From the sequence record MN871444.1: a stretch of 64,000 bases of DNA; one strand, written 5' to 3'. The notes beneath the pieces are model-generated. The model ran no database searches and had not been told where the DNA came from. It saw nothing but the letters and a program-made list of their open reading frames with translations. This document shows positions 48,360 through 64,000 of this stretch, piece by piece. Position 1 is the stretch's first letter, and every line of letters begins with the position of its first letter. Made by a program: the position numbers and the translations under genes.

Positions 48360-50885
48360 TTATGCCAATGAGATAGTTGAGCGTGCTTCAACCCAGTCAG
48401 TGCCCAGAGTATTCGAACTCCCTGAGGTTAATCTATACCATCCGGCGATTACGTAGGTGTGGGTTAGGGTATTCGACCCTACCGTGATCGTTTGTGTCTT
48501 TATTGCTTTATCCAGATTTTTTGCGAAATAACCTGCCGGCCAATACCCAGTCGTAGGAACCGATGAGGTTGCCGACATGCCAGAAGCGTACTTTGTAGTC
48601 AAGTAAGTTGCGGACGTGGGATCGGAATCCTCCACTATAAAATCATCCGAGGTCATTTTTGGGATATACCTGACCCCTTTATTGTTGGTACTCCCCGCTA
48701 CAGTGAAATCATAGCCATCCGCCGGCTGACATAAATAAATATTGTTTTTTACAACACCCGTACCGCGGGTAGTTTCAGCACCGGTATTATTACGCATACC
48801 CCCTACGTCAGATACGCCAATAGCGCAGTTCCGAAATATATTATTTTTTGCAATAATTCCCGTGACATATGACCGACTAACCCCGGCTGGAACATCAGTA
48901 TTATTCCACCCGCCTCCAGAAGTTCGATAACTACTTTCTAAATACGGGTCTATGTCAAAAACATTGTCCGATACATTTAAAAATCCATAGGGTTGACCTA
49001 GTTTACTAGATGATGCAAAATTACCACCCGAGACATCCACTCCTGAAGTACCGAGGCGAATAAATTCGTTATCTTTAATAACAAGGTTATTAATAAACGT
49101 ACAATATTTTAAATTTATTCCTTTGTCTAACCCATAGAACAAATTGTCTTTTGCCACCAATCGATGTATTGCTGGAGTGGGGGTATACTGCCCAACCCTA
49201 GCTAATATTCCAGTCCCAGTGCGCATTGTGGACATTATCGGGTCTACCCATCCAGTAGGGCAAAATACTTTACCCAAACCCCATGATGAATATAGATTGG
49301 CGTCCGGTAACGTTCTAGTAAACTGGTTGCCGGAAATTCTTATATCTCTGATGCCAAATATTGGGGATGTTTTTGTGGTATTACCTGCACTCGCTAGGAA
49401 ATAGGTTTCTGGAAGGACAAAGGAATGTAATGCATAATCGAATTGGCCTGGGGGGACTGAGTTCGTTACTGCCACTTGTGGGTACGGTGAAATTAATATA
49501 CCTACGTTCCACAATGAGTCAGAACCTTGAGACGGGACGTTGGACCCCCCTGCGGCAAATACCGCGGGAGCCGGAATCATATCAGATATAAGGTTATCTT
49601 TTATATTGATTGCGGCCATATCGTTAGCACCTTCTGTACCACCACTCCAGCCAACCATAATCCCTAAATACTTGGTTCTATTCAATATGTTATTACTTAT
49701 ATTGGTGTACGTACCCCCCAAACAAGCGATACCGCAGGTATCAATCAATACATTATCAGTTATTACACATCCTCGATTGAGAGTTTGAGTGTACCCAACT
49801 AAATTAGATTTGTAGTCAGTTCCAGCGGCAATGGCGTTATCGCCACAATGCTCTATGTAATTTCCAGATACCACTGTGGAATGATTTCCACCTACTCGGA
49901 TGCCATCTCGCATCGAATTTTTTATAGTGCAGTTTTTTATTTCCGCCGACAAATTACTACCGGCCACAATACTGAATCCCCGACACCATAATACACTGAC
50001 GTTGGTTATGCTGACATTTTCGAAGTACTCAGCACGGATCGCCCCCTCAGTCCCTACAGTGGATGCATTGTAGTAGGTGCTGGTGTTAGTGCTATCATAG
50101 GCGAAGAAATTTCCTTCCACCCCAGTTATGGTAAAATCCCTTAACACGCAGTTTGCTGGTTTTGTCCCTGGATAATACAAAGAACCATAACTCATCATAC
50201 CACCCGCCCCGGCTTTGATATGAAAAACAGTCCTTCCTTCACCGGCCCCGATAATACAACCATAATGGTCAAATTGAGCATCAATCAGGTAGTGCCCAGC
50301 TGGGACATATAGTTGTTTATTTTGCAAATAAGCCGTTTTACAAGCGGTCTCCAATAATACTGACATGCCGAGTTGCAGAGAACCATTCTTAATATCGTCA
50401 TATTGGGTTGGGGTAATAAATTTGAAAAAACTTATCATATCCAATTCTGTTTTATGGATTACATTATCTAGTTCTGCCTGTACGGAATTTCCTTGCGTAC
50501 CCCCAAGAAAATTTGTTACTGTAGTGGTTATAAGTCCCGCCCCCAAACCCTCTTCACTTGAACGGAGGTTTTCGCGAAGCACTGAATCATTGCTGTATGC
50601 CCAGGCCCCAGAACCGATGCCACCGGTGGTGTCTGGCGTGCTTCCTGAGGGTACTGTTTTCGGGTAACTGCCGGTCCAAACCAAACGTTGGCCGCCATAA
50701 ACAATTTCTTCTTTTATAGACGTAATGGTAAAACCGACATCGAAAGATTTACTGGCGGTCAGGAAATTCGTCATTGGGATTTGATAATTACTCCCATCTT
50801 CGCTATACAGCAATGCCCCGGTGTTATAACCCAACCCGTAGGTCGGCAGGTCACTCAGGCGCTTTGCGATTACTCTACTGGTCAT
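48360..50885 (-). CDS. tailspike/depolymerase A (841 aa): anchor head, tailspike N-terminal domain and beta-helix body; currently expressed arm of switch 1
   Basis: GAGGT RBS before ATG 50885; KRLSDLPTY anchor; WTGSYPKTVPSGSTPDTTGGIGSGAW matches the Tail_spike_N-type motif; pectate-lyase-like repeats. Confidence 0.85.
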   Translation of the reverse strand: MTSRVIAKRLSDLPTYGLGYNTGALLYSEDGSNYQIPMTNFLTASKSFDVGFTITSIKEEIVYGGQRLVWTGSYPKTVPSGSTPDTTGGIGSGAWAYSNDSVLRENLRSSEEGLGAGLITTTVTNFLGGTQGNSVQAELDNVIHKTELDMISFFKFITPTQYDDIKNGSLQLGMSVLLETACKTAYLQNKQLYVPAGHYLIDAQFDHYGCIIGAGEGRTVFHIKAGAGGMMSYGSLYYPGTKPANCVLRDFTITGVEGNFFAYDSTNTSTYYNASTVGTEGAIRAEYFENVSITNVSVLWCRGFSIVAGSNLSAEIKNCTIKNSMRDGIRVGGNHSTVVSGNYIEHCGDNAIAAGTDYKSNLVGYTQTLNRGCVITDNVLIDTCGIACLGGTYTNISNNILNRTKYLGIMVGWSGGTEGANDMAAINIKDNLISDMIPAPAVFAAGGSNVPSQGSDSLWNVGILISPYPQVAVTNSVPPGQFDYALHSFVLPETYFLASAGNTTKTSPIFGIRDIRISGNQFTRTLPDANLYSSWGLGKVFCPTGWVDPIMSTMRTGTGILARVGQYTPTPAIHRLVAKDNLFYGLDKGINLKYCTFINNLVIKDNEFIRLGTSGVDVSGGNFASSSKLGQPYGFLNVSDNVFDIDPYLESSYRTSGGGWNNTDVPAGVSRSYVTGIIAKNNIFRNCAIGVSDVGGMRNNTGAETTRGTGVVKNNIYLCQPADGYDFTVAGSTNNKGVRYIPKMTSDDFIVEDSDPTSATYLTTKYASGMSATSSVPTTGYWPAGYFAKNLDKAIKTQTITVGSNTLTHTYVIAGWYRLTSGSSNTLGTDWVEARSTISLA
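50553..50578 (-). repeat. invertase crossover site A (hix/gix-like, core TC on the minus strand)
   Basis: Minus strand TTCGCGAAAACC-TC-CGTTCAAGTGAA; 18-bp exact inverted repeat with site B. Confidence 0.9.
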
Positions 50886-50909
50886 GTTGTTATACCTCAC
50901 GCAGTGGCG

Positions 50910-50940
50910 TCTTGTAAAAAATGATAAGCATAAAATGAGG
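50910..50940 (-). promoter_or_regulatory. 31-bp upstream element with TTTTATG (late-promoter-like), identical to 63595-63625
   Basis: CCTCATTTTATGCTTATCATTTTTTACAAGA on the minus strand upstream of tailspike A; TATG is the known phiKZ late promoter core. Confidence 0.75.
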
Positions 50941-50947
50941 TCGCACC

Positions 50948-52486
50948 GTGGTTCATTCAAACCTCCGTTCAAGTGATACTGGAAAAGGGGGTAGTTTAGT
51001 TAACACTATTATCGGGGTATCTGTGGGGGATTGGTTAGGCAATACCGTAATAACTCCAGACATGTTTTATACCTCTAATGATGCTGACTGGTCATCGGCT
51101 TTTTCTTTAGCCGCCGCCGCATGTACCAAATTAAAACTGCCCGTGACCTTATTACCTAGGACATATACTTTTAATAAGTCAGTAGATTTGACCATATTTA
51201 GTTATGGTGTTGTCTGCGATGCCTCCAGAAACAATAAGGTTATTTTTAAAGCAACGGATAATTCCACCAATGCTGAAGTTTTTGTGTCTATGAAAAACGT
51301 AGACCGTCGAAAAACAGGTGGATTTCTCATAGACGCCAATAATTTATTTGATGTCGGATTTGATACCACGTGGGATTTGACTGGCGGGCCTTCACTAATG
51401 ATGGTTTGGGAAAAAATACAGATTCAGGGATGGAGAACTATAGGGTGGCGTGCAAATAACAATAATGATGTTTGGAATAAAAATATTACCATTCTCGAGC
51501 CCGGGGCCGGCGTAATAGCAAATGCAGTTAGCTATTATAACCATAGTGCGGGAGGGCCGATTTCATTCGAAGGGTGTAGCTTCCAGGGAGGAAGAGTCCA
51601 AATTACCGCCCAACATATAAGTGCTACCTTTTGCGTGTTTAGGGGCATTGAAATAAAAACGGGAGGTTCTGGATGGAATACTTTTGCTGCGATGGGATGT
51701 CATTTTTTTAAAGATAGTTATTATAATGCATGCTTCACTTTCGCCGGTAACATTCAAGGGTTTACTGTGATTGGTGGGTTGGTTGAACCCACTGACGGTG
51801 GGGTGGTATTGCTGGGGCTGGGTACTGGTTATTTCAATTGCGGGCAATTGGAATTTATGAATACCAGAATTAGTTCCTATAACGCCACTGCACCTGCGGT
51901 GTTAGCCAGCGGAACTATGCTATCAGCTTACGGTAATACCACTATAAAAATAACGGGGGGCATTGCGGAACTGTCTTCTTATGACCCGACGACAATGGGT
52001 TGGGTAAACACCCTAGTCATAGATAAGGTCTTATTAAACCAATTAAACAACACCCCCATAACGCGTGTATTTTCCGGAACCACGTTACGTTACAATAAGC
52101 CAACGGTTGGAAACATCAGCGTCATTAATACCTCATCCACGGCATGTATTGTAACTGATTTACTAAACACGCTGACTACGACAAGTCGAAATTTTGGAAA
52201 TATTTCGGCCCTGGATGGAGCAAAAACAACCAGAAGTGGCGGGACAATAAAATTAGTCTATGCCGATGGCGGTGGGTACGCCGAATATAGATATGCACGT
52301 ACGGGCACCACAGCTGTAACTTTAACTTTAGTATCCGAAGCTTACGTAGACACTACAAGGCAATTATCCGTGTATAATTCCAGTTCTCAGTATGTTTATG
52401 TGGCTAATAGCCGAGCGGCCGGTTCAACTGGCGATTCCTGGACCCTACTAATATCGTTCACCGGCACCCTTGATTACATTCCATAA
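50948..52486 (+). CDS. headless tailspike body B (512 aa): alternative cassette of switch 1
   Basis: Lacks the anchor head; begins at site B in the same frame (SNLRSSD vs ENLRSSE); beta-helix-like sequence. Confidence 0.85.
   Translation: MVHSNLRSSDTGKGGSLVNTIIGVSVGDWLGNTVITPDMFYTSNDADWSSAFSLAAAACTKLKLPVTLLPRTYTFNKSVDLTIFSYGVVCDASRNNKVIFKATDNSTNAEVFVSMKNVDRRKTGGFLIDANNLFDVGFDTTWDLTGGPSLMMVWEKIQIQGWRTIGWRANNNNDVWNKNITILEPGAGVIANAVSYYNHSAGGPISFEGCSFQGGRVQITAQHISATFCVFRGIEIKTGGSGWNTFAAMGCHFFKDSYYNACFTFAGNIQGFTVIGGLVEPTDGGVVLLGLGTGYFNCGQLEFMNTRISSYNATAPAVLASGTMLSAYGNTTIKITGGIAELSSYDPTTMGWVNTLVIDKVLLNQLNNTPITRVFSGTTLRYNKPTVGNISVINTSSTACIVTDLLNTLTTTSRNFGNISALDGAKTTRSGGTIKLVYADGGGYAEYRYARTGTTAVTLTLVSEAYVDTTRQLSVYNSSSQYVYVANSRAAGSTGDSWTLLISFTGTLDYIP
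50952..50977 (+). repeat. invertase crossover site B (core TC)
   Basis: TTCATTCAAACC-TC-CGTTCAAGTGAT; inverted relative to site A. Confidence 0.9.
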
Positions 52487-52493
52487 TTAATGT

Positions 52494-52529
52494 AACATAT
52501 TGGGAGGGCAAAACCCCTCCCTTTTATGC
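52494..52529 (+). terminator. intrinsic terminator, dispersed repeat family member
   Basis: AACATATT-GGGAGGG-caaaa-CCCTCCC-TTTTATGCC. Confidence 0.85.
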
Positions 52530-52572
52530 CCGCGTTCTTTATCGTATGCACTTTTATAAAGGAGGGCACCAC

Positions 52573-53136
52573 ATGGGCTTTACCCCTAATTTCACCCTGT
52601 CCTCATATTACGTGGTTAATATTGGACTACCGTCTTCAGAATTGGTATTTGGATTAATTAACCACGATAACCATTCCACATTTGCCGCCTCTGATGTGTT
52701 CTTTGATATCCCTGCGAGCACTGCTCCGGGTAGTTTAAGAAACACGCAAATCACGTTATATCGTCAACCGCCATACGACTACGATTCGATGGTAGTGACT
52801 TATGACAGGTTAGACCTCGATGAGGCGTTAGAAAAACATCTGCCTATTATTTTGTCCCTTGAAGAAACCGATCTCAACCTCACCGATCTCATTCCTTATT
52901 TCAATAATACTTATAACCTATCTTTAATTGACGGTGAGGTTTTAGGAGGGGTTATCGATACGGTTGCAGATACAAATGCGTTCACCATCTCCGATTCCAG
53001 TTTAGCGTGGCGAGGCACCGTAGATTTTACAGCCATTGCTCTAGGCCATTCTTTAATGGTTGATGACACTGGGGAATACATCACGGTCGGAAATGGCCTT
53101 TTATTGGAAATCACGCCACCACCAACAAGTGAGTAA
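52573..53136 (+). CDS. tailspike adaptor-like paralog 1 (187 aa)
   Basis: LPSSELVFGLINHDN, YDRLDL and TISDSSLAW motifs shared with three paralogs; GGAGG RBS. Confidence 0.7.
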   Translation: MGFTPNFTLSSYYVVNIGLPSSELVFGLINHDNHSTFAASDVFFDIPASTAPGSLRNTQITLYRQPPYDYDSMVVTYDRLDLDEALEKHLPIILSLEETDLNLTDLIPYFNNTYNLSLIDGEVLGGVIDTVADTNAFTISDSSLAWRGTVDFTAIALGHSLMVDDTGEYITVGNGLLLEITPPPTSE

Positions 53137-53142
53137 AATAAC

Positions 53143-54918
53143 ATGGCACAGACAGTTGCGAAGAAAGGCCTGGCCGCACTCCCTGATTTGGGGAGCGTTA
53201 TGGGTGAAAACGGCTACTTTCATTATAATGAAGATGGGGTAGACTATCGTTTTCCTGTGGCTCTTTTAAGTCAAATTTCCGTACTTGCTGCCGCTACTGG
53301 CGCAAAAAGCATCGGCCTAGATTTAACAACCGTGTGGAACGTCCTTTCTGGGCGCACCCGCAATTTCTTTGAATTCCTCAGCGATGATAAAATCATTGCA
53401 GTGAAAGCCGGTGAAGATGTGGATGTTACCACAGAACTTCAAGCGGCAATGGATGCGAATTGTGCTATCAAAATACCTGACGGTAGCTATTTCGTGACGC
53501 AAGCTATCACCACGTCCATCAATTCTGGTTTGGTGGGTGATGGTCCTCGCAACTGCGTGATTGATAACCGCGGTATTGACCATCTTTTCAAATTCCCTTC
53601 TGGGTATAACCGTGGGTGGAAAGTGTGGTGTGGGTTTAAAATCAAATCCAGCAATCAGGCGGCACTCAAGAAATATGCCTTTTATTTCATGGGCTCCGCT
53701 GCGGCAGGGTATTTGGATTATGCTGCTTCCCATTGGTTCCAATTAATTGAGTTTGATGGTACCGGCATGGGTGGAGGTTGGTATCTCCAGGATTGTTTCC
53801 GGGTAACCATCCGGGACTGCGGCGCAACGGCACACGGCAACCCGTTCTATATTGCAGGTTCAGTAGTTCAACTTACCGTCGATAACTACGTCAACAATGG
53901 TGATAACGCCCCCGTCATGGACGTCGGGTCATACGGCGTATATATGACCAATAAAACGTACACCGATGGTAATGGCGTCAAGTCTCCAGAAGGCATCAAT
54001 TTTACTCATTGTAAATTTGTTAAACAGGCTGTTGGCGCTTATACGGTCGGATTATTTATCAACTTTTCTAAATGTGAATTTGATTATTGTTGGCAATACG
54101 GTGGGTATTATCGTGGTGGTAGTCAGGTCACGTTCGATATGTGCTATGTGGGTGCCCAAGCAAATCGACCTAATGATTTTGTGGGGTTCATGATCCCAGC
54201 ACAGGCGACGGGTGTTGCAGAAAAAGTTGTAGTTCATAAATGCACCATTAACATGCAAACGAACACAAATGCCAATGCCGCGAATTATGTCTCTAAAGGT
54301 ATCCAAATAGGTAATTCAACCGTGAACCCGATTGCGGCAGATATTGTCAGCAATACTTTCCGGGGAACAGGATACACCATCGGGATTCATGTGGCCCGGG
54401 GACTTGGCATTAAACTGGATGCCAATGCATTCCTATATACCGGCGTGGATATCCAGGTAGACGAATGTCGCACCTTATGGATGGCCAACAATACCACCAG
54501 TATTGATGATTCCGGTAATCCGCGCGGCACTTACAGCGTAACCACTACTGACAACAGTGCCGAATGGTTTATTGTTGGGAATGACGGAACGTTCACTACT
54601 AAAAGTATCGTCAACCCTGCCCGATGCATCATAATGAATCGGTATTGGACGCCCTACGTTACCAGAACTGCATGGTCACCGATAGCAGCAGTCAGTACGA
54701 GTATTTCTGCTGGCGGTACTTATTCATTCAGTATGGCCGCTACAGCGGATGCCAACGCCGTTTATTCTTTAGCGGGCATAACCGTTGCGGGGTTGCTTTG
54801 GAGTGTAGTTTATATTAACACCACCTCTGTTCGCGTGACCTTTTTTAATCCGACTGCCTCTACGATTACACTCAATGCTTCGTTGCGTGTGAAGACAGAG
54901 TGGCCTCCAGTGGGGTGA
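53143..54918 (+). CDS. tailspike/depolymerase C (591 aa)
   Basis: KKGLAALPDL...HYNEDGVDYRFP anchor; DVTTELQAAMDA...IPDGSY pectate-lyase-type start; beta-helix repeats. Confidence 0.8.
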   Translation: MAQTVAKKGLAALPDLGSVMGENGYFHYNEDGVDYRFPVALLSQISVLAAATGAKSIGLDLTTVWNVLSGRTRNFFEFLSDDKIIAVKAGEDVDVTTELQAAMDANCAIKIPDGSYFVTQAITTSINSGLVGDGPRNCVIDNRGIDHLFKFPSGYNRGWKVWCGFKIKSSNQAALKKYAFYFMGSAAAGYLDYAASHWFQLIEFDGTGMGGGWYLQDCFRVTIRDCGATAHGNPFYIAGSVVQLTVDNYVNNGDNAPVMDVGSYGVYMTNKTYTDGNGVKSPEGINFTHCKFVKQAVGAYTVGLFINFSKCEFDYCWQYGGYYRGGSQVTFDMCYVGAQANRPNDFVGFMIPAQATGVAEKVVVHKCTINMQTNTNANAANYVSKGIQIGNSTVNPIAADIVSNTFRGTGYTIGIHVARGLGIKLDANAFLYTGVDIQVDECRTLWMANNTTSIDDSGNPRGTYSVTTTDNSAEWFIVGNDGTFTTKSIVNPARCIIMNRYWTPYVTRTAWSPIAAVSTSISAGGTYSFSMAATADANAVYSLAGITVAGLLWSVVYINTTSVRVTFFNPTASTITLNASLRVKTEWPPVG

Positions 54919-54922
54919 TATA

Positions 54923-55444
54923 ATGGCGACGTATGTTCCCGATATTTCGTTGACTTCCGATGAGCTGGTATACCAGCTCATCAATAACGACAACGGTACT
55001 TATTATGATGCGGCCCATCTAACTCTGGGTGTTCCGTCAGTCAATACCACTGATTACTCAGACAAAAATACGCGCATTACTGTATCACATCCAAAATACG
55101 GTGCAATAGATGGCACCCTCCTTTATTACAATCGAATGGACATACAGAAGGTGTTTGATAATACCTTCCCTTTATTCGTTTGTTTAAATGGGGAATTAAC
55201 CGCCAGTGAGTTAGGTGCGTATTTCCAATCCACCTATGGTGTTGGCCTAGGTAGTGTTGACATATCTCCGACTATCATTTCTGGGACCACCAACACGGAG
55301 ATAGTTTTCACCATCTCCGATTCCAGTTTAGCCTGGTATGGCCAAACCCCAATGATGGTGGTTAGTAAAAGCCATTATTTTTACGGTACTCCGGACACTC
55401 TGGGGTATTACGTTTTATCTGATGGTAGTCTGTTGACTGCTTAA
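54923..55444 (+). CDS. tailspike adaptor-like paralog 2 (173 aa)
   Basis: LTSDELVYQLINNDN, YNRMDI and TISDSSLAW motifs. Confidence 0.7.
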   Translation: MATYVPDISLTSDELVYQLINNDNGTYYDAAHLTLGVPSVNTTDYSDKNTRITVSHPKYGAIDGTLLYYNRMDIQKVFDNTFPLFVCLNGELTASELGAYFQSTYGVGLGSVDISPTIISGTTNTEIVFTISDSSLAWYGQTPMMVVSKSHYFYGTPDTLGYYVLSDGSLLTA

Positions 55445-55455
55445 TGAGGGCTATC

Positions 55456-56115
55456 ATGGCAGGATTTTACATCGTTGATTTGTCCTTGCCATCTGATGAG
55501 ATGGTGTTAGGGTTAATCAACAATGACAATGAATTAGCATTGCGGATGGACGAAGTTAATTTGGGGGTAGCTCAAGTTAATACCGACGTCATAAGGCACC
55601 CCCGAGACACTACCATGCTCGTGACTAACGGGAAATACGCCAGAGATACATTACGGGTCTACTACGACCGACTCAGTATTGAGGATGTTATTTCCATGAA
55701 ATATCCCATCATTGTTCGGGGCGTGGCTGATGGTAATGTATCTGATCTACTGACCTACGTCAATTCTGAATATGGGTTGGGTTTGGTGCCAGCAGATATC
55801 GTCGATGCCGCATTAAGCGATTTGACTGAGGAAATTGCCAGCGCGGAACTGGACATGCAGTCGACTAACCGCGCTTGGTTGGGGTCGGTACCTATCCTCA
55901 TTCTCGGTGATGGCATGACTGTATTACGTCAGGAAGACGATGATGGCATCATGTTGTTATTTGATGATGATACTTACATCGCTGTAGGTAGTCCAGCATT
56001 CGCTATTGAGAACATGGTCACTTTGGCGGAAGGGCAGTCCGTATTAGTCACCCAGGCGGTAAACCCTATCACCGCGACAGATGGTACCTACTATCTGCTG
56101 CGTAGCGCAACGTAA
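55456..56115 (+). CDS. tailspike adaptor-like paralog 3 (219 aa)
   Basis: LPSDEMVLGLINNDN, YDRLSI and RAWLG motifs; GAGG RBS before ATG 55456. Confidence 0.7.
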   Translation: MAGFYIVDLSLPSDEMVLGLINNDNELALRMDEVNLGVAQVNTDVIRHPRDTTMLVTNGKYARDTLRVYYDRLSIEDVISMKYPIIVRGVADGNVSDLLTYVNSEYGLGLVPADIVDAALSDLTEEIASAELDMQSTNRAWLGSVPILILGDGMTVLRQEDDDGIMLLFDDDTYIAVGSPAFAIENMVTLAEGQSVLVTQAVNPITATDGTYYLLRSAT

Positions 56116-56129
56116 TAAGGAGAGCCGTT

Positions 56130-58040
56130 ATGGCCCAGACCCCCGTAACAAAAACACTGACTGATTTACCCGTATATTCCAATACCGGTTATGCTGGTCA
56201 TTTGTTGTACACTGATAGTAATATTGAATATCGATTACCTTTAAATTCTCTCGTACGAAAGTCAGAACTGGGAAATAGTGATGGGTTTAAGTATATTGGT
56301 CAAGTGGAATCATGGGCCGATTTACAATCGATTACATTAACCGAAGCTAACGTCGTCATTAAGTTAAAGTCATACGTTGCGGGCGGGGCTTTAACGGGAA
56401 CATCTCCTTCGGGTGGCGGATACTTCATTTCAGTATCGGGCACAGCCACTGACGACGGTGGTAGTATATGCGTACCTTCCGGACAAACTAATTTTTATCT
56501 TGTTCGAATCAGGGCAACAGATGAAATCAATCTATCCGAATATGGGTTGGTTCCTGGAGGTGAAATTGCAATACCTTTGATTAAAGCTGTGGCTTATTCA
56601 AGATCAGTGGGCATTACTAAAATAGTTATCCCGCCGTCATATGGCGAACAGTATTATACCTGGTCATCGCAGGTTAACGTTGACGTAACTAAATACCCTC
56701 TGACGTTAATGGGTGGTTCCGGTGAAAATATGAACGAAGTAATGGTGTACCATTACCCCACCGCGACTAATGAAGTGGCCATTGATTTTAGTACTACTTC
56801 GGCAGGGTCATCACCCACAGAAGCAGCATGCATCTGCGGTTTTTATTTTTATAATCAAAATACCGCCGTCAACGCATCTGCCATCCAGTTTTCAGATGCG
56901 TGGGCACATAAGGCCAGAAATTTATACATCACGCATTATGCGTTAAGCGCCGGGATTCGGATGGTTAATATCAACTCCTGGACCGAAAACTTCCAGGGAG
57001 AAAATTTAAATATCCGGCACTGCAAATATGGGTTTTGGTTGTACACCACAGGGTCCTGGCAATCGTTCTATGGAATGAAACTGGAGAAATATTATTTTAA
57101 CCACGGTAGCGCCGTAGGTGGGCCATCATATTCAATGTATCTTGGCAATGGCACTTCCACTGGATATGCATTCCTTTATGCTGCAGACTTGGATATGGGT
57201 GGTTGGCTGGGTACGACATATTCCACGGGACCTCACTGCGGCATATATCTTGCACCTTATTCTATCGTCATGGGCAAGTGCCGCATGAATTATGATGGTA
57301 CACAGCAAGCTAGTCTGGCAACTTATTTTACCGCCGTATACACGGCGTCAACCCAATGTATCGCGCGGCTTGATTTTACCAACAACAACGACCAGTTCTC
57401 TTATGTATCCATACAAGCCCCAGATTCTGCAAGCACCCTGAGTTATGCTCTTTGGGATAACTTAGCATATCCCGCATTAAATGGCTCTAAGACGTACGGG
57501 CGCTCAAACTGGATGAACGTGGCGATGGCGCGTTCCCCAATTATTTTATCTGGTGCACAACAAAAGTGGAAAACTACGGTGACTTCCACTAGCACTACCA
57601 AAACAGACCCCGGAATAATTAGGGTAGTCGGTTTACCAATATTATCAAATTTCAAAGTTGAGATTAAAACCAGCGGGACTAACCAGGTGTGCAATAGAAC
57701 ATTTATTGTTAATGTACATAACCAGGATTTGGTCGCCGCAGTAACAGAACAACAGCAATTGTCTGCAGGGACGGCAACAACAAGCACCTTTAACTCAACG
57801 ACCTCTACAGTTACCTCTATAAGCACCACAACGCTGACGCAATACTCGTCGTTCACAAATCAACGAGTTTATTGTCGCACATACAACGGCGTTCAGCCTG
57901 GGTATTATTCAGCTGGAAATGGTCAGACGTTCGATATCGTTATTCCTCCATCGACGTATAATGGCACCTCGGCTAATGCGGATGCGGTTGTGACGTCAGG
58001 ATTAACCACTGCGATTGAAATAATTATTACTCAGATTTAA
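56130..58040 (+). CDS. tailspike/depolymerase D (636 aa)
   Basis: KTLTDLPVY...LLYTDSNIEYRLP anchor; DGFKYIGQ...GGGYF...DDGG domain common in enterobacterial phage tailspikes; beta-helix body. Confidence 0.8.
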   Translation: MAQTPVTKTLTDLPVYSNTGYAGHLLYTDSNIEYRLPLNSLVRKSELGNSDGFKYIGQVESWADLQSITLTEANVVIKLKSYVAGGALTGTSPSGGGYFISVSGTATDDGGSICVPSGQTNFYLVRIRATDEINLSEYGLVPGGEIAIPLIKAVAYSRSVGITKIVIPPSYGEQYYTWSSQVNVDVTKYPLTLMGGSGENMNEVMVYHYPTATNEVAIDFSTTSAGSSPTEAACICGFYFYNQNTAVNASAIQFSDAWAHKARNLYITHYALSAGIRMVNINSWTENFQGENLNIRHCKYGFWLYTTGSWQSFYGMKLEKYYFNHGSAVGGPSYSMYLGNGTSTGYAFLYAADLDMGGWLGTTYSTGPHCGIYLAPYSIVMGKCRMNYDGTQQASLATYFTAVYTASTQCIARLDFTNNNDQFSYVSIQAPDSASTLSYALWDNLAYPALNGSKTYGRSNWMNVAMARSPIILSGAQQKWKTTVTSTSTTKTDPGIIRVVGLPILSNFKVEIKTSGTNQVCNRTFIVNVHNQDLVAAVTEQQQLSAGTATTSTFNSTTSTVTSISTTTLTQYSSFTNQRVYCRTYNGVQPGYYSAGNGQTFDIVIPPSTYNGTSANADAVVTSGLTTAIEIIITQI

Positions 58041-58050
58041 GGAAAAGAAT

Positions 58051-58332
58051 ATGTCGTTTACCAAAACTAGCATTTTAGAGTACAATAAATTATTTTATTC
58101 AATCGGGGCTGAAGTTACAGGGGGGTCTGAAGAAGTAATATTGACTTACACCGCTACCGGAATTAATTACGGCGGTAGGGAAATTGGTGATGTCGCAGAA
58201 ATAGTATTTTCTATTACGTGTGACTCGCCACAAATACAAACTAATTGTACCTCTGTTATTTCAGTTCAGTCGACCGATGCTGATGAAATATTAGCTCAGG
58301 CGGAATCGGAATTGCAAAAATCTTTGGGCTAA
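58051..58332 (+). CDS. small tailspike-associated protein, possibly an assembly chaperone (93 aa)
   Basis: AAGGA RBS; directly downstream of a spike gene; function inferred from position. Confidence 0.6.
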   Translation: MSFTKTSILEYNKLFYSIGAEVTGGSEEVILTYTATGINYGGREIGDVAEIVFSITCDSPQIQTNCTSVISVQSTDADEILAQAESELQKSLG

Positions 58333-58370
58333 AACAACATATCGGGAGGGCGAAAGCCCTCCCTTTTGTG
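58333..58370 (+). terminator. intrinsic terminator, dispersed repeat family member
   Basis: AACAACATATC-GGGAGGGC-gaaa-GCCCTCCC-TTTTGTG. Confidence 0.85.
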
Positions 58371-58422
58371 TGAAACTGTACGGCCCATTTTATGCTGATA
58401 AAATTTTATTGAGGGGTCTATT

Positions 58423-60885
58423 ATGGCAACGCTGCCGTCGTTGAAAAAAATATCGGATCTGCCGACCTACGGCAGTTCTTCGCCAGACTCAGGAACGATG
58501 CTGTACACCGAAAACGGGATTGATTACAAACTACCAATAAATACGCTAACCCGCGCAATTGATTTAGCATCCAACCTTTCTGGAAAAGGGGGTGGGTTAG
58601 TCGGATTAGAGCAGGGTGGAACCGTACAGTCAGCGTTACTGGGGTATATTAATGCAGCCGCCTTTGGCTATCTCGCCGATTATAACCCGGTGACTAATAC
58701 CGGTACGGATAATACCGCGGCACTTAGAGCGGCCGCCACGTACTGCTTACAGCATGGGATTAGAAAATTAATCCTTCCGCCGGGTATGGGGTTAATTTCC
58801 GATTATATTCCAATAGATGTCGGTACTGTGGGGGAAGCTGTTGCAGATCGATTTAAAGGATGTCAGGACGGGTTCCACATCCAAGGGGCTGGGATGTATT
58901 CCAGTTTATTGGTGTTTGATGCGCCTGATGCAGATACCCCAGCGATAAAAGCAACTGGAGATTGGGGGACCCACACGGCGCGCGCAATCAGTGATTTAGC
59001 GATCGTCCCCCGCACTACTGCCGCGTATAACGTAGATACGCTAGGTCAGGGTATCCAGTTTATTGGTGGGTGTTTCATCCCCATCAGAAACGTGGTGATT
59101 GGTAGATTCCATAAAGGGATTTGTTTCTGGAATAAAAATAAAGGCGTTAACGACACCGCAAATACATTCACTGCCGGGGATTTTACTGAATTTATTCGGG
59201 GCAACAATATACGCATATTCAACTGTGATATCGGTATCGATTTCATGGTTACTTTGGGCAACAATTCATTTCACGGCATTAACTTTACCCAAACCCAAGT
59301 GCAGATTAGAAAATATGGCGGTATTGGGGTTCGTTTTTATGATGACGGTTCTAGGGCCGCTATCGTCACACCTTCAAGCAATTACCAATTCATTGCTAAC
59401 GTTTACAATGCTAAATTAGATATAAATCTATTTGGTGATGACTCATCTACGTGCTATGGGCTCTATTTAAGCGGTGCCCAGGGTAGGGGGATGTCGGGAG
59501 ACATTACCTGCGAAGGGGCCATGACTCTCAAAACAAACAGTTTTGAATGGTATCAGAGTTTCGGTAGCCTACACTCCATATCTGCCATAAATCTTGAAAT
59601 TGGAGCCACTGATACTTCAACCAGACCGGTCGCATTTATGTTTTCTAATGCGGCATATCCCCAAACTTACTTTGATGGCAGTGATCCTACTTTATTAAGT
59701 ACGTCATACCCCCGCCAGTTTGATGGAAACAATCATGGCAATACTGGTATGGATTTATTAAATATTCGCGGGGCGCAATCTGGAAGTATCTGGTCCCAGG
59801 TCGCAAGCAACGTGTCGGTAGGGTGGATTTTTTCAACACGTACTACCGGTGGAAGCCGACCGGCTCAACGTACTGTCTGGCAATTTTCTTATGATGGCAC
59901 TCGCATATCTTCAGCCGGCACATCGGTCGGACTGTACAATTCAACAGTGGGGGTTGATTTAACTGCGGCGGCATTAGTCCCTTCTGGTAATACTACCTTG
60001 AATATTGGTTCGGCATCGTATCGATTCAACAGTGCTTATTTTAATGGTTGGAATATAGGTTCTGGCGGCGTTGTTCCTACTGCTGATGTGAGTTTTAACG
60101 TTGGTAGCTCTACTTTCCGAGTCAACCGGTCTTATGTTGCCTCTCGGTATTACACATCGACTGTATTTGATTCGTCGGGAACTGGTTCTCCCGAAGGGGT
60201 GGTTGCGGCAGCAATTGGTTCTACTTATCGCAGAACTGACGGTGGTGCAAATACATCGTTTTATGTGAAGGAATCTGGAACAGGCACTACGGGCTGGGTA
60301 TCCACTGGCTCAGTCAGGCCGTATGTTTCTGGCATGTTTGTGAGCCCAGGGAATCTGGTGTTGTCTGGAAACTACATATTTAAATATCTGGGTACTGCTG
60401 CAGATATTACCGTCGCTCCAGTACCTGGAACACTATGGAGTATGTTGATTCCAGGAGCTTCAGTAAAAATAAAAGCCACGGCAACTCAAACCACCACAAC
60501 GGGGACCAACACAGCCCTAACTTGGGCATCCGCTACCACGGAGTATAATAGTAGCAGTATTTATACGGTTGCTACTGCCGGAATTACTGTTCCAGTGGCC
60601 GGGATATATCGCATCGCCGGTAGGGTTGCTTTTGCTTCCAACAACACAGGTACCCGGTCAGCCGGAGTATTTATTAACGGCTCCTATTACGCTGGGTCTC
60701 AGGCTAGATTCGTTGCCAAATCCGGCGGGTATGCAACTACCGCAGATTACAATGACACGTTATCGCTTGCCGCTGGGTCGATTATTACGTTATCTGGATT
60801 CCAGGATTCTGGTGGGAACTTAGATACTGTTGCAACAGCCCCAGATGTATCTTTCCTGGTAGTCAGTTTGGTAAGCTACGTTTAA
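58423..60885 (+). CDS. tailspike/depolymerase E with C-terminal C1q/TNF-like domain (820 aa)
   Basis: KKISDLPTY anchor; DNTAALRAA...LILPPG beta-helix start; GSPEGVV...RTDGG...YVKESG motif; ITVPVAGIYRI C1q-like signature. Confidence 0.8.
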   Translation: MATLPSLKKISDLPTYGSSSPDSGTMLYTENGIDYKLPINTLTRAIDLASNLSGKGGGLVGLEQGGTVQSALLGYINAAAFGYLADYNPVTNTGTDNTAALRAAATYCLQHGIRKLILPPGMGLISDYIPIDVGTVGEAVADRFKGCQDGFHIQGAGMYSSLLVFDAPDADTPAIKATGDWGTHTARAISDLAIVPRTTAAYNVDTLGQGIQFIGGCFIPIRNVVIGRFHKGICFWNKNKGVNDTANTFTAGDFTEFIRGNNIRIFNCDIGIDFMVTLGNNSFHGINFTQTQVQIRKYGGIGVRFYDDGSRAAIVTPSSNYQFIANVYNAKLDINLFGDDSSTCYGLYLSGAQGRGMSGDITCEGAMTLKTNSFEWYQSFGSLHSISAINLEIGATDTSTRPVAFMFSNAAYPQTYFDGSDPTLLSTSYPRQFDGNNHGNTGMDLLNIRGAQSGSIWSQVASNVSVGWIFSTRTTGGSRPAQRTVWQFSYDGTRISSAGTSVGLYNSTVGVDLTAAALVPSGNTTLNIGSASYRFNSAYFNGWNIGSGGVVPTADVSFNVGSSTFRVNRSYVASRYYTSTVFDSSGTGSPEGVVAAAIGSTYRRTDGGANTSFYVKESGTGTTGWVSTGSVRPYVSGMFVSPGNLVLSGNYIFKYLGTAADITVAPVPGTLWSMLIPGASVKIKATATQTTTTGTNTALTWASATTEYNSSSIYTVATAGITVPVAGIYRIAGRVAFASNNTGTRSAGVFINGSYYAGSQARFVAKSGGYATTADYNDTLSLAAGSIITLSGFQDSGGNLDTVATAPDVSFLVVSLVSYV

Positions 60886-60894
60886 GGAGTTACC

Positions 60895-61413
60895 ATGCCA
60901 GCAAGTATGTATGTAGTGGATACGTCCCTACCCTCTGTTGATTTGGTCTACGGGCTTATCAACAACGATAACAACACGGTTTATAGTAAATCAACACTCA
61001 ACCTGGCTACGCCAGAAACAAATACCAATCCCGCGATTGATCGTAATAGTAAAATCCTGGCTTCGAACATCAAATACAGTAACAACACTTTGATGTTGTA
61101 TTACGATAGATTGGATATTGCTGACGTATTGCGCATGGAGTTACCCATCATTTTGTCGAATGTAACCGAAACCACGGTAGACCAAATGATGTGGTTTTTT
61201 AACTCCACGTACAAGATGGGATTGACCAAAGCTGAAATTAATGCGTCGGCAGTTGATTTAACCAATAACACCACTACGTGGACAATTGCGGATAATTCAA
61301 TGGCGTGGGTGGGAAATCTACCATTAACCATTTTACCATCCGGGTATGGCCTTTTGATTGATGAAACAAACAATCAATTGTTGGATGAAGATGGGTCATA
61401 TTTAATTTTATAA
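60895..61413 (+). CDS. tailspike adaptor-like paralog 4 (172 aa)
   Basis: LPSVDLVYGLINNDN, YDRLDI and TIADNSMAW motifs; AAGGAG RBS. Confidence 0.7.
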   Translation: MPASMYVVDTSLPSVDLVYGLINNDNNTVYSKSTLNLATPETNTNPAIDRNSKILASNIKYSNNTLMLYYDRLDIADVLRMELPIILSNVTETTVDQMMWFFNSTYKMGLTKAEINASAVDLTNNTTTWTIADNSMAWVGNLPLTILPSGYGLLIDETNNQLLDEDGSYLIL

Positions 61414-61417
61414 ATAG

Positions 61418-61456
61418 GGCATAAAAGGGAGGGCAAAAGCCCTCCCAATATGTTGA
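61418..61456. terminator. bidirectional terminator, dispersed repeat family member
   Basis: GGCATAAAA-GGGAGGGC-aaaa-GCCCTCCC-AATATGTTGA between convergent genes. Confidence 0.85.
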
Positions 61457-63001
61457 TTACACTGCGGTTCCCGTTGCATCAACCCATCCAGTATTTGTGG
61501 CATTTCGCCAAATGGGTTTATTCAAGGTAGTATCAAAATATTGATCCCCGGAATTAGAAAATGCATTCGGCCGCAACGCGGTAGTCCCAACCGCCACTGT
61601 CTGTGGCCCTACTTCATACCAGATGCCATTATACCGCCAAAATTCATATGTGTTGCCTAATCTACATGTTTTTCTTCCATCTGAAGTACATCCTTTTACT
61701 ACAAACGTCGAACTCCTTACTAGAGTAATATTTGCGTTTCCGTAGATTATAACACGTTGGCCCTTGACCCCGTTCAGTAAATCAGTTATATCCGTAGCCA
61801 CGGTATCTGTAGGTATGTATGTTTTCACACCTTCAACATTTGGTGTGCTGCCAGTACCTCGCTGATATCCATCGTACATAACGTGCAAAACCCCATTAAA
61901 CAAAGAATCAGAGATCGCTGAGGTTATATGCCCGGTGGATAGAAATGAAGCTATTCGGGGCTTTAAACTCATATCGGATTGATCCGCGGAAGAAATCCAT
62001 TCAATACCGTATTTGTGGGTTCCGTCAGCACGGCAGTTACTCAACTGACTGCGATTATCTAAAACAAATCCGCTATAAGTTCCACTCGCCCCATTTGAAT
62101 TATTAAGGGCATGACAATTACTCATTATGGCTGAGCCATAAAAACCATGACCATAATTTAAATCAGCGCGGCAATTGGTTAATTTATGCATGGCTCCCGT
62201 GGCTGACACACATATCCCAATTTCCGATAACTCCCCCTCCAAATTGACGGCGTAGTTATTTGCGCCACCCAGCAATATACCGCAAAGATACAATGATGTT
62301 GATTGTATCGCAGTAATGCCAGTATTACCCTGAATACGTTCAATAAAATTATCGGCGCCATTGAACACAAACACCCCGGTTCTTGCCGATCTCGAACGAT
62401 TTAATAAACAGTTTGTTCCAGAAAGATCTGAAAATTTTCCAATCAGAGCATTTGTAACCAATGCCTCATCGGAAAAATAATCCCACTTACATGCAGTGAC
62501 AATCCAGTCGTTTGACCCCGCACGAAGATTGACCCCACCACCAGGCAATGCTAACCCACCGCCTTTAAAATCAATCCCGATAATCCCACCACAGTCGCCA
62601 CCACCAGTAGGGGTATCTATAACCCATCCTGAAGTTGCCGGCGTAAACTGAGTACCGTACTTAGTTATGGACGCCCCGAAGGATAATATCCCACGCACAG
62701 CACCAAAGGTACAACCAATATGGCAGACGTTAGATTTATTTATAAAATTTAATTTATAAACCCCTCTAGGCCAGTAAATCCCACCACCACCTAACGAACT
62801 GACATAATCTACCAAGGCTTGCGCCGCTGCAGAATCGTCAGTTATGCCATCCCCAATAATACCATAATCCTTAGCATTAAAAACATCGCTTAAACGCGCC
62901 GCCAATGTTCTGGTAACTGATGGGCCATTTTGCGCGGCAAAAGACACCATGCTTGCGCCATCACTTGAACCCAGGTTTGAGGGAATATATGTCGACACCA
63001 A
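61457..63001 (-). CDS. headless tailspike body F (514 aa): alternative cassette of switch 2
   Basis: No anchor head; starts across site C (SNLGSSD); NAKDYGIIGDGITDDSAAAQA pectate-lyase-3 start; C-terminal GTTALRP...YFDTTLNKPIW...WVDATG motif. Confidence 0.85.
   Translation of the reverse strand: MVSTYIPSNLGSSDGASMVSFAAQNGPSVTRTLAARLSDVFNAKDYGIIGDGITDDSAAAQALVDYVSSLGGGGIYWPRGVYKLNFINKSNVCHIGCTFGAVRGILSFGASITKYGTQFTPATSGWVIDTPTGGGDCGGIIGIDFKGGGLALPGGGVNLRAGSNDWIVTACKWDYFSDEALVTNALIGKFSDLSGTNCLLNRSRSARTGVFVFNGADNFIERIQGNTGITAIQSTSLYLCGILLGGANNYAVNLEGELSEIGICVSATGAMHKLTNCRADLNYGHGFYGSAIMSNCHALNNSNGASGTYSGFVLDNRSQLSNCRADGTHKYGIEWISSADQSDMSLKPRIASFLSTGHITSAISDSLFNGVLHVMYDGYQRGTGSTPNVEGVKTYIPTDTVATDITDLLNGVKGQRVIIYGNANITLVRSSTFVVKGCTSDGRKTCRLGNTYEFWRYNGIWYEVGPQTVAVGTTALRPNAFSNSGDQYFDTTLNKPIWRNATNTGWVDATGTAV
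62960..62985 (-). repeat. invertase crossover site C (hix/gix-like, core TG on the minus strand)
   Basis: Minus strand TTCCCTCAAACC-TG-GGTTCAAGTGAT; 20-bp exact inverted repeat with site D. Confidence 0.92.
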
Positions 63002-63018
63002 CCCTCAAGGACATAAAA

Positions 63019-63570
63019 ATGATCTACGGTTATGCCCGAGTTTCTACTCAACATCAGGATACTACACTACAACTTATTGCGCTTCAGGCAGCCGGTTGCG
63101 ATGAAATTCGCGAAGAAAAAGCGTCTGGTAGAAGTAGAAACAGACCCGTATTGAAGAAACTGCTAACCGATCTTCAATCCGGCGATGAATTAGTATTGTG
63201 GAAAATAGACAGGATGGGTAGGAATGTATTACATGCCTTAACCTGGTTGGCTGAGCTGCAGGATAAGAATGTAAACCTCAGGTCAATCACCGACGCTATC
63301 GATATGCGTACTGCTTCTGGCCGTTATAGTTTTCGCAATATTTTGAATGCCGCACAGTACGAATCGGACGTAAATAGCGAAAGAACCTTGGCTGGACTAG
63401 CTGCAGCCAGAGCACAAGGTAGGGTGGGTGGAAGAAAACCAACAATGACCGAACCCGTTTTGGAGAAAGCACGGGATTTAATAAATGCCGGAAATAATTA
63501 CCGTGAAGTAGCTGAAGTCATCGGAGTGACCACAAAAACGATATACAAATATTTTCCAGTCAATTCATAA
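63019..63570 (+). CDS. serine DNA invertase, Hin/Gin/Pin family (183 aa)
   Basis: YARVST catalytic Ser9, LVLWKIDRMGR, ERTLAGLAAARAQGRVGGR and C-terminal HTH VIGVTTKTIYKYFP; AAGGA RBS before ATG 63019. Confidence 0.95.
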   Translation: MIYGYARVSTQHQDTTLQLIALQAAGCDEIREEKASGRSRNRPVLKKLLTDLQSGDELVLWKIDRMGRNVLHALTWLAELQDKNVNLRSITDAIDMRTASGRYSFRNILNAAQYESDVNSERTLAGLAAARAQGRVGGRKPTMTEPVLEKARDLINAGNNYREVAEVIGVTTKTIYKYFPVNS

Positions 63571-63577
63571 TTTTTTG

Positions 63578-63606
63578 ATGAGGCGGCTTGGCCGCCTCAT
63601 TTTATG
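63578..63606 (+). terminator. invertase terminator
   Basis: ATGAGGCGGC-ttg-GCCGCCTCAT followed by TTTATG. Confidence 0.75.
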
Positions 63607-63625
63607 CTTATCATTTTTTACAAGA
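63595..63625 (+). promoter_or_regulatory. 31-bp upstream element with TTTTATG (late-promoter-like), identical to 50910-50940 on the minus strand
   Basis: Exact match by manual comparison; lies just before the RBS of tailspike G. Confidence 0.75.
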
Positions 63626-63634
63626 GGGGCTATC

Positions 63635-64000
63635 ATGGCCAACAGAGCGATTACGAAGAAAATTAGTGCTTTGCCGACCTACGCACTGAACAACAATAAC
63701 GGCAATTTACTGTATAGTGAGGGGGGTGCAAATTACCAATTTCCGTTGAGTAATATTGCCCTTCTTTCAAACCTGGGTTCAAGTGAAGTGGGTAAAGGGG
63801 CGAGTCTGATAGGGACATCAGACGGTAGCAATTTACAACAAATTGCAACAGTAGTAAGTGACCAACTTATAACCAACCCACAAATTGTTGCTGGCGACAA
63901 CATGTCCGTTTTAGACCGAATCAAAGTCAAAGGCCAGTATGACATCAACCCGGCACCTCAGGAACCCCAAGCCGCAGTAGGTATTACTTTTGGAGGGCAG
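63635..64000 (+). CDS. tailspike G, 5' part (runs off the window); currently expressed arm of switch 2; not in the ORF track
   Basis: GAGGGG RBS; manual translation MANRAITKKISALPTYALNNNNGNLLYSEGGANYQFPLSNIALLSNLGSSEVGKGASLIG... is open to the window end. Confidence 0.9.
   Translation, partial: MANRAITKKISALPTYALNNNNGNLLYSEGGANYQFPLSNIALLSNLGSSEVGKGASLIGTSDGSNLQQIATVVSDQLITNPQIVAGDNMSVLDRIKVKGQYDINPAPQEPQAAVGITFGGQ
63762..63787 (+). repeat. invertase crossover site D (core TG)
   Basis: TTCTTTCAAACC-TG-GGTTCAAGTGAA; left arm is 10/12 identical to the hixL arm TTCTTGAAAACC. Confidence 0.92.

Follow-up and report, generated by a model that had tools for sequence, protein, structure and literature searches.

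The closest described counterparts of the DNA switches considered here are the Gin/G segment of phage Mu, the Cin/C segment of P1, the Min system of p15B and the Hin system of Salmonella. In the Mu G segment, the constant N-terminal part of the receptor-binding protein lies outside the invertible DNA, and two variable C-terminal parts with their chaperones lie inside it. In this study, a stretch of 64,000 nucleotides, referred to as the window and corresponding to bases 62001-126000 of sequence record MN871444.1 ("Serratia phage KpGz_1", 269 kb), was analysed for a locus in which tailspike genes are interleaved with small genes of the Pfam family DUF7941 and with the gene of a DNA invertase. 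We consider it likely that this locus is the receptor-binding arsenal of a chimallivirus-type Klebsiella jumbo phage, with anchored modular spikes, a DUF7941 scaffold at the baseplate periphery, and two invertase switches. Of most interest in the region are the two switches, which appear to be built inside-out and would account for two spikes that lack an anchor. No description of such an invertase switch in chimalliviruses was found in the literature searched.

KpGz_1 is an Eowynvirus-like chimallivirus, a jumbo phage with the listed host Klebsiella pneumoniae. It is related to KpHz_2 and to Klebsiella phage vB_KvM-Eowyn (genus Eowynvirus; here Eowyn), with about 81-87% DNA identity, and an Eowyn-like phage has been assigned to the nucleus-forming Chimalliviridae (preprint). 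The record carries no annotation, and its "Serratia phage" name and UNVERIFIED_ORG flag are at odds with the Klebsiella pneumoniae host and the Eowynvirus kinship. Upstream (5') of the spike locus, the window codes for a phiKZ-type tail sheath, terminase and virion proteins. The map of open reading frames (ORFs) gives the locus order as A (minus strand), switch 1, B, duf1, C, duf2, duf3, D, an ORF of 93 amino acids, E, duf4, F (minus strand), switch 2 with the invertase, G, H, I, duf5 and J, where capital letters denote spikes or spike bodies and duf1 to duf5 the DUF7941 genes. The body of G extends past the end of the window, and H, I, duf5 and J lie wholly beyond it. In all, the phage has about 10 tailspikes, which are predicted to be capsule-degrading.

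A repeat search returned a 26-bp element in four copies in the window. The pattern TTCNNNCAAACCTSSGTTCAAGTGA, with up to three mismatches, had four matches in the window against 0 expected, and was found nowhere else in the 269-kb genome. The copies form two inverted pairs: s1 (50553-50578, minus strand) with s2 (50952-50977, plus strand), both with the core TC, and s3 (62960-62985, minus strand) with s4 (63762-63787, plus strand), both with the core TG. In every site, imperfect dyad half-sites of 12 bp flank a 2-bp core that is non-palindromic and identical within the pair, which is the build of hix and gix sites.

Between s3 and s4 lies a gene (63019-63570, plus strand) for a small serine DNA invertase of 183 amino acids. 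The protein aligns end to end with Mu Gin (4m6f) with an expectation value (E) of 5e-45 and about 50% identity, including the catalytic serine and the YARVST motif, and it follows the plan of the Din family with an N-terminal catalytic domain containing Ser 9 and a C-terminal helix-turn-helix (Resolvase 6e-36, HTH_7). The ORF from 62920 to 63570 (216 codons) is that of the invertase and not an adaptor gene. At the helix-E positions governing Fis dependence in Hin and Gin (Hin F105, H107, M109, and L112), the KpGz_1 enzyme (residues 104-114) has S, R, I, and A, and the essential second Phe is kept. Judged by these residues, the invertase might be independent of Fis, which would be relevant within the phage nucleus and for switch 1 at its distance of 12 kb. 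No relatives of the invertase were found in IMG/VR. In viral and metagenome contigs, the site pattern gave single unrelated matches, among which only contig L005 also has an invertase and none has anchors or DUF7941, with one microbial contig from a gut metagenome (L011) screened by local tblastn only.

All four sites lie in one reading frame, over codons for N-L-(R/G)-S-S. Downstream of each site, the frame stays open for 507 to more than 700 codons, whereas upstream it is open only at the two sites that are joined to an anchor. One of these is in spike A (841 amino acids; 48360-50885, minus strand), which comprises a 43-residue anchor (50757-50885), a Tail_spike_N domain, s1 at codons 105-110, and a beta-helix body (48360-50553). 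The other is in spike G (563 amino acids in the full record; from 63635 to the window end at 64000, plus strand), with its anchor at 63635-63763. Body B (50957-52486, plus strand) has 509 open codons in frame from s2 and body F (61457-62980, minus strand) has 507 from s3, and in both cases stop codons stand directly before the site. The ORFs listed for them (50948-52486, and 61457-63001 on the minus strand) have no anchor, start codon, or promoter. On this evidence from the reading frames, B and F are headless silent cassettes of the invertase switches, which would be the reason that they are anchor-less.

Switch 1 (50553-50977) is a putative invertible segment that stretches from the core of s1 to that of s2 (about 400 bp) and holds a promoter-like element and the 107-codon head of spike A. 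Switch 2 (62960-63787) is a putative invertible segment of about 800 bp between s3 and s4 with the invertase gene, a hairpin, a promoter-like element (63595-63625), and the 47-codon head of spike G. Just 5' of the anchor start codon, both segments carry an identical 31-nt element, which is read as promoter and ribosome-binding region. From this arrangement, the phage invertase can probably flip the segments of the two anchors A and G and so pick alternative bodies. Inversion of the shorter segment would place the A head on body B, and inversion of the longer segment, with the invertase carried along, would place the G head on body F, so that anchor A would be followed by body A or B, and anchor G by body G or F. 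In Hin, sites with mismatched cores are not ligated and return to the parental arrangement (PMC4513852), and because of this the distinct cores TC and TG would keep one switch from recombining with the other.

The invertase is shared by KpHz_2 (99% identity), where the sites number six, three with TC and three with TG, and each anchor has three bodies. The resulting spike repertoires would be four in KpGz_1 and nine in KpHz_2. The KpHz_2 sites lie at 11994, 15865, 16263, 26385, 31403, and 32203 of its contig (L002). One pair of them encloses two tail-to-tail bodies in a Mu-like manner, and another pair would invert a 5.8-kb block with spike E, duf4, a silent body, and the invertase.

The anchored N-termini belong to A (true start 50885, minus strand), C (53143), D (56130), E (58423), and G (63635), and can be aligned over about 43 residues. 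Among seven anchors, including those of I and J just past the window, the invariant positions are M1, K8, L13, P14, G23, Y27, Y34, and P37. A hidden Markov model built solely from the seven anchors of Eowyn matches exactly five of the 1101 six-frame segments of the window, with E from 1e-19 to 1e-24 and 0.38 for the next best. These are the same five spikes for which the preliminary description had reported a common N-terminal pattern, and its reading of them is confirmed. A and I have an extra Tail_spike_N domain between anchor and neck (PF18668, 4e-14 in A). Outside the Eowynvirus lineage, no relatives of the anchor were found, as a word search returned only orthologs of D, tblastn only the three phages, and the ESM Atlas nothing usable.

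Behind the anchors, the body of spike A matches Beta_helix (4e-9) and Pect-lyase (2e-6), the bodies of C and F have matches to beta-helix-type families below the cut-off (for F, Pect-lyase at 9e-6), and D, E, and F match PHROG families of tail fibres or spikes. Body B matched no family, but its homologues carry P22-type and other spike N-termini. By these family matches, the spike bodies are beta-helix, depolymerase-like parts, which follow the attachment module and a neck.

How anchors, bodies, and small genes have evolved relative to each other was addressed by an all-against-all comparison of the spike loci of KpGz_1, KpHz_2, and Eowyn. The DUF7941 genes are positional orthologs with 83-98% identity over their full length, and so are the anchors, at about 71-100%. 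In contrast, other sequences take the place of the body in A, D, G, I, and J, and of the middle part in E, immediately behind the anchor, and the exchange point is the Leu codon of the N-L-(R/G)-S-S motif. Because anchors and DUF7941 genes are kept by position while bodies are replaced, the former are, as judged from the three genomes, a fixed chassis and the latter cargo. The earlier statement that the spikes share a constant start and then diverge thus holds, in the form of position-specific anchors with exchangeable bodies. Spike C (591 amino acids; 53143-54918, plus strand; anchor 53143-53271) has a body conserved in all three phages. Spike D (636 amino acids; 56130-58040, plus strand; anchor 56130-56258; phrog_9823 at 8e-41) has a body replaced in the relatives right after the anchor, and in metagenomes the D anchor is found on bodies of 581 to 722 amino acids. 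Spike E (820 amino acids; 58423-60885, plus strand) has its anchor at 58423-58554 and a promoter-like element at 58381-58427. A further rearrangement is seen in Logan contig L013, where a 717-residue spike with a D/E-like anchor (5662-7815, minus strand) lies between D and duf4 with no gix-like site nearby.

The preliminary description had also regarded the region, by eye, as more AT-rich than the core genes and had taken this as consistent with imported bodies. The locus does have a lower GC content than the rest of the window (44.5% versus 47.5%), but there is no difference between the bodies (44.8%) and the anchors together with the DUF7941 genes (44.3%). Since chassis and bodies are equal in GC, AT-richness says nothing on import, and that part of the argument fails. 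Import of bodies is shown instead by comparative genomics, with the replaced bodies of the three loci and with further occurrences: B-like bodies also sit behind a P22-type head-binding domain and behind another N-terminus, and a protein 52% identical to body B (P0175, 57 member sequences) occurs in Klebsiella quasipneumoniae genomes, presumably prophage-borne. These occurrences show that bodies do move horizontally.

The second constant component is the set of small genes. The four that lie in the window, duf1 to duf4, align with 20 invariant columns, including L.S...V..LIN.DN, Y.R, and AW.G, and all four match Pfam DUF7941 (PF25613) with E from 1e-19 to 3e-25 and 69-90 bits, against a curated cut-off of 27. 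The four paralogous small genes with shared motifs that had been described earlier are therefore real relatives of one another. All are short forms on the plus strand: duf1 (52573-53136, although the start may be 52546; positional orthologs 92% identical), duf2 (54923-55444), duf3 (55456-56115, with a longer C-terminal tail), and duf4 (60895-61413; 96-98% identical across the three phages). With duf5 there are five local paralogs, and there are 10 per genome, five of them far from the spike locus. The genes are under purifying selection, with a ratio of nonsynonymous to synonymous substitution rates (dN/dS) of 0.05-0.08.

In a profile search, DUF7941 returned 685 representative clusters, and the architectures include single domains of about 150-190 amino acids, tandem arrays of two or three, and N-terminal modules before immunoglobulin-like (Ig), SPRY, or propeller domains. 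In the phage collection, 72 records contain the family. The named relatives, SPN3US, RAY and its kin, Goslar, and Asesino, are phiKZ-like jumbo phages in which the proteins are mostly annotated as "virion structural protein".

An AlphaFold2 model of duf2 (mean confidence, pLDDT, 90) was compared with the Protein Data Bank, and phiKZ gp127 was the one outstanding match (Foldseek E 7.6e-8, TM scores 0.61/0.70). VIA-align gave a Z score of 11.6 over 138 residues, with 6.2 for the next match, and the sequence profile matched gp127 with E 4e-10. In the model, the N-terminal globular fold of duf2 is that of phiKZ gp127 residues 1-150. The Eowyn annotation has a full-length DUF7941 gene right after its ORF128 homologue and then a short one, which mirrors phiKZ gp128-gp127-gp126. 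From these matches, the small genes of KpGz_1 are short-form DUF7941 genes, homologues of phiKZ gp127/gp126 and Goslar gp22/gp23.

In the phiKZ atlas, each "star lobe" has gp127 at the outer tip of its gp139 band (PMC13250141). Of the ten DUF7941 proteins of Goslar, two reach about 580 and about 2140 copies per virion; AlphaFold predicts head-to-tail oligomers, and purified gp22 forms filaments (Goslar preprint). The authors of that preprint propose a filament cloud on the peripheral baseplate. The comparison with these proteins supports the view that the small genes of KpGz_1 encode structural proteins of the baseplate periphery rather than body-specific chaperones.

This leads to the question whether the DUF7941 proteins hold the anchors. 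In the arrangement proposed here, they would form a peripheral scaffold that carries the spikes through their anchors, with a contact that is possibly indirect. That each DUF7941 adaptor docks one anchor, as in the plug-and-socket system of the preliminary description, we can only infer. The parts of that idea that stand are the modular spikes, the conserved attachment apparatus, and a place of the small proteins at the baseplate periphery, which is backed by the homology to phiKZ gp127 and by relatives in virions; its argument from AT-richness does not. A proposal that the anchor mimics the C-terminal tail of DUF7941 was rejected after the hhalign result was not significant (probability 0.6%, P 0.1), and this counts against a scaffold holding the anchors, as do the absence of a Rosetta-stone fusion of an anchor or spike body with DUF7941 among 150 diverse DUF7941 proteins (searched with the anchor hidden Markov model and the spike bodies) and the numbers, which are not one-to-one, with seven anchors against five local or 10 genomic paralogs.

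The alternative with the greatest weight is that DUF7941 proteins and spikes are neighbours and not partners, in which case DUF7941 would build its own filament cloud or baseplate rim and the anchors would dock on a gp130 homologue, on a baseplate protein, or on each other via Tail_spike_N. In phiKZ, the fibres attach beneath gp130 and not on the DUF7941 protein, and gp127 merely terminates the gp139 band (PMC13250141). Eowyn carries homologues of ORF130 and ORF128 together with fibre-like tail protein genes elsewhere in its genome. These observations tell against the scaffold as the attachment point; in the same direction, half of the paralogs are distant from the spike locus, and the anchor is limited to this lineage, whereas DUF7941 is found throughout the chimalliviruses. 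On the other hand, the five local DUF7941 genes are closely packed among the spike genes, 3-16 nt apart and in an order kept in all relatives, and a DUF7941 gene of SPN3US adjoins tail fibre genes. Three Goslar paralogs are, moreover, covalently fused to carbohydrate-binding, hydrolase, or beta-helix domains (Goslar preprint). We regard a mere neighbourhood as a real possibility, though one that falls short of even.

The scaffold reading can be carried further and joined to the switches. The five short DUF7941 proteins would then be dedicated connectors, with their N-terminal domains in a filament network at the baseplate rim and paralog-specific tails that each catch one anchor, and a single invertase, possibly Fis-independent in the phage nucleus, would toggle two of these plugs. 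As a whole, this combined picture is put forward tentatively and is rather doubtful. If true, the arsenal would be hung on the filament cloud by non-covalent plugs and not by fusions, and a virulent jumbo phage would yield mixed progeny, with four capsule specificities in KpGz_1 and nine in KpHz_2.

Whether the switches are in use was assessed from the conservation of the silent bodies and from related contigs. Headless B differs from its equally headless ortholog in KpHz_2 by 260 synonymous and 63 nonsynonymous differences, giving a dN/dS of 0.023, as compared with 0.029 for the expressed spike C. Because a gene without start codon and promoter would otherwise not be under such selection, B is probably expressed in another configuration. 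P0169, from the Logan assemblies, is an intact 613-residue protein in which anchor A and Tail_spike_N are followed by a body with 90% identity to B, the junction falling precisely on the site. About 270 nt past its stop codon, the opposite strand has a relic site, as a descendant of an inverted isomer would. Likewise, a body that is silent beside the invertase in KpHz_2 and in contigs of run X5 is fused to anchor G in contigs of run X9.

Several points weigh against switching by the invertase. The synonymous sites are saturated, so that the dN/dS of B is approximate. In run X9, the sequence 5' of the promoter is not that of the invertase, and the arrangements in X9 and P0169 may be fixed and have been made by recombination. 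None of the sequencing runs contains KpGz_1; those compared are Logan contigs of relatives, the best of which shares a fraction of 0.28 of the sampled words, and no joints were reported for them. The distance from switch 1 to the invertase is 12 kb, and the switch itself is only about 400 bp long. Host Fis may be unable to reach DNA inside the phage nucleus, and no Fis-bound enhancer was identified, no dependable scan for Fis sites having been made.

In an alternative reading, sites and invertase are relics that no longer flip, and homologous recombination at the conserved neck motif is the sole means of body exchange. Fixed arrangements with degenerate sites do exist in Eowyn, which is without invertase and silent bodies and retains one intact and one degenerate site, and in the phage of contigs L019/L020. 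In KpGz_1 and KpHz_2, however, the invertase is intact and 99% identical although the two phages differ by about 14% in their DNA, all 10 of their sites fit a 25-nt pattern with cores identical within each family, and headless B is under strong purifying selection in both. Relics are considered unlikely, and working switches remain the preferred explanation.

The least probable reading is that the small genes encode spike-specific assembly chaperones of the tail fibre assembly type that are not in virions: they do directly follow B, C, E, and I, much as U and U' follow S in Mu, but they do not co-vary with the bodies (duf4 is nearly invariant beside differing bodies, and duf1 is kept with or without B), they match no chaperone family, and their homologues are virion proteins by mass spectrometry and cryo-EM, so this reading was rejected. 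As the DUF7941 genes do not track the bodies, they group with the anchors in the conserved attachment apparatus. They contrast in this with the 93-residue ORF after D (58051-58332, plus strand), which has no homologue in the relatives and no family match, and which is either an accessory travelling with the body of D or a spurious ORF.

Other features of the locus include three near-identical GC-rich palindromes, located after B (52502-52521), after the 93-residue ORF (58344-58363), and between duf4 and F (61427-61446). Each is bordered by T or A runs, and they look like bidirectional terminators. Downstream (3') of G, the spike-like H (575 amino acids, record positions 127342-129069) has no anchor and no crossover site. 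In Eowyn, a transposase gene (gp240; L017 7713-8807) lies directly 3' of the last spike J, and there is none at that position in KpGz_1.

Klebsiella phages are limited by capsule type, and the locus would provide two layers of host-range flexibility. The first is the conserved chassis of anchors and DUF7941 genes, to which depolymerase bodies of unrelated phage types are fused at a fixed position. The second is a programmed DNA switch of a type known from temperate Mu- and P1-type phages. The locus also offers the newly described DUF7941 family a concrete candidate role in spike attachment.

Compared with described systems, the DUF7941 family itself is known, if only recently described, and the enzyme and the sites fit the Gin/Hin family, but the layout is not that of Mu. 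With the switches of Mu, P1, and p15B and with Hin, KpGz_1 shares a small serine invertase, 26-bp sites in inverted pairs inside a receptor-binding gene, and an N-terminal part that would be joined to alternative C-terminal parts; like Hin, it has invertase and promoter inside the segment. It differs from the Mu-type layout in being inside-out, with the constant head and the promoter inside the segment and the bodies fixed outside, and from the Din-family switches in having two separate switches with different cores and one enzyme. Unlike in Mu and P1, the cargo consists of tailspikes and not fibres, no chaperone genes are swapped, and the phage is a virulent, nucleus-forming jumbo phage and not a temperate one.

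Many beta-helix spikes per virion with conserved N-terminal attachment and exchangeable bodies are also found in the branched fibres of RaK2 and phiK64-1, in TSP1-4 of CBA120, and in G7C gp66/gp63.1, and A and I have a Tail_spike_N domain of the TSP1/Gp66 type as in CBA120 and G7C. In contrast to these multi-depolymerase arrays, the 43-residue anchor of KpGz_1 is confined to the Eowynvirus group, and the neighbouring genes are DUF7941 and not T4 gp10-like or XD-domain adaptors. Eowynvirus has already been counted as a carrier of nine depolymerases (2026 preprint). The DUF7941 proteins resemble those of Goslar and phiKZ in Pfam family, in the N-terminal fold, in their many paralogs (10 here and 10 in Goslar), and in the presence of short forms, consisting of N-terminal domain and linker, beside a long form. 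The difference is that Goslar fuses binding or hydrolase domains to the DUF7941 module, whereas KpGz_1 interleaves five short forms with anchored spikes. In its general logic, one promoter-bearing 5' module that is flipped or re-joined to silent headless cassettes, the locus resembles the promoter inversion of Campylobacter fetus sap and the vsa system of Mycoplasma pulmonis, which differ from KpGz_1 in serving cellular antigenic variation by means of RecA or a tyrosine recombinase.

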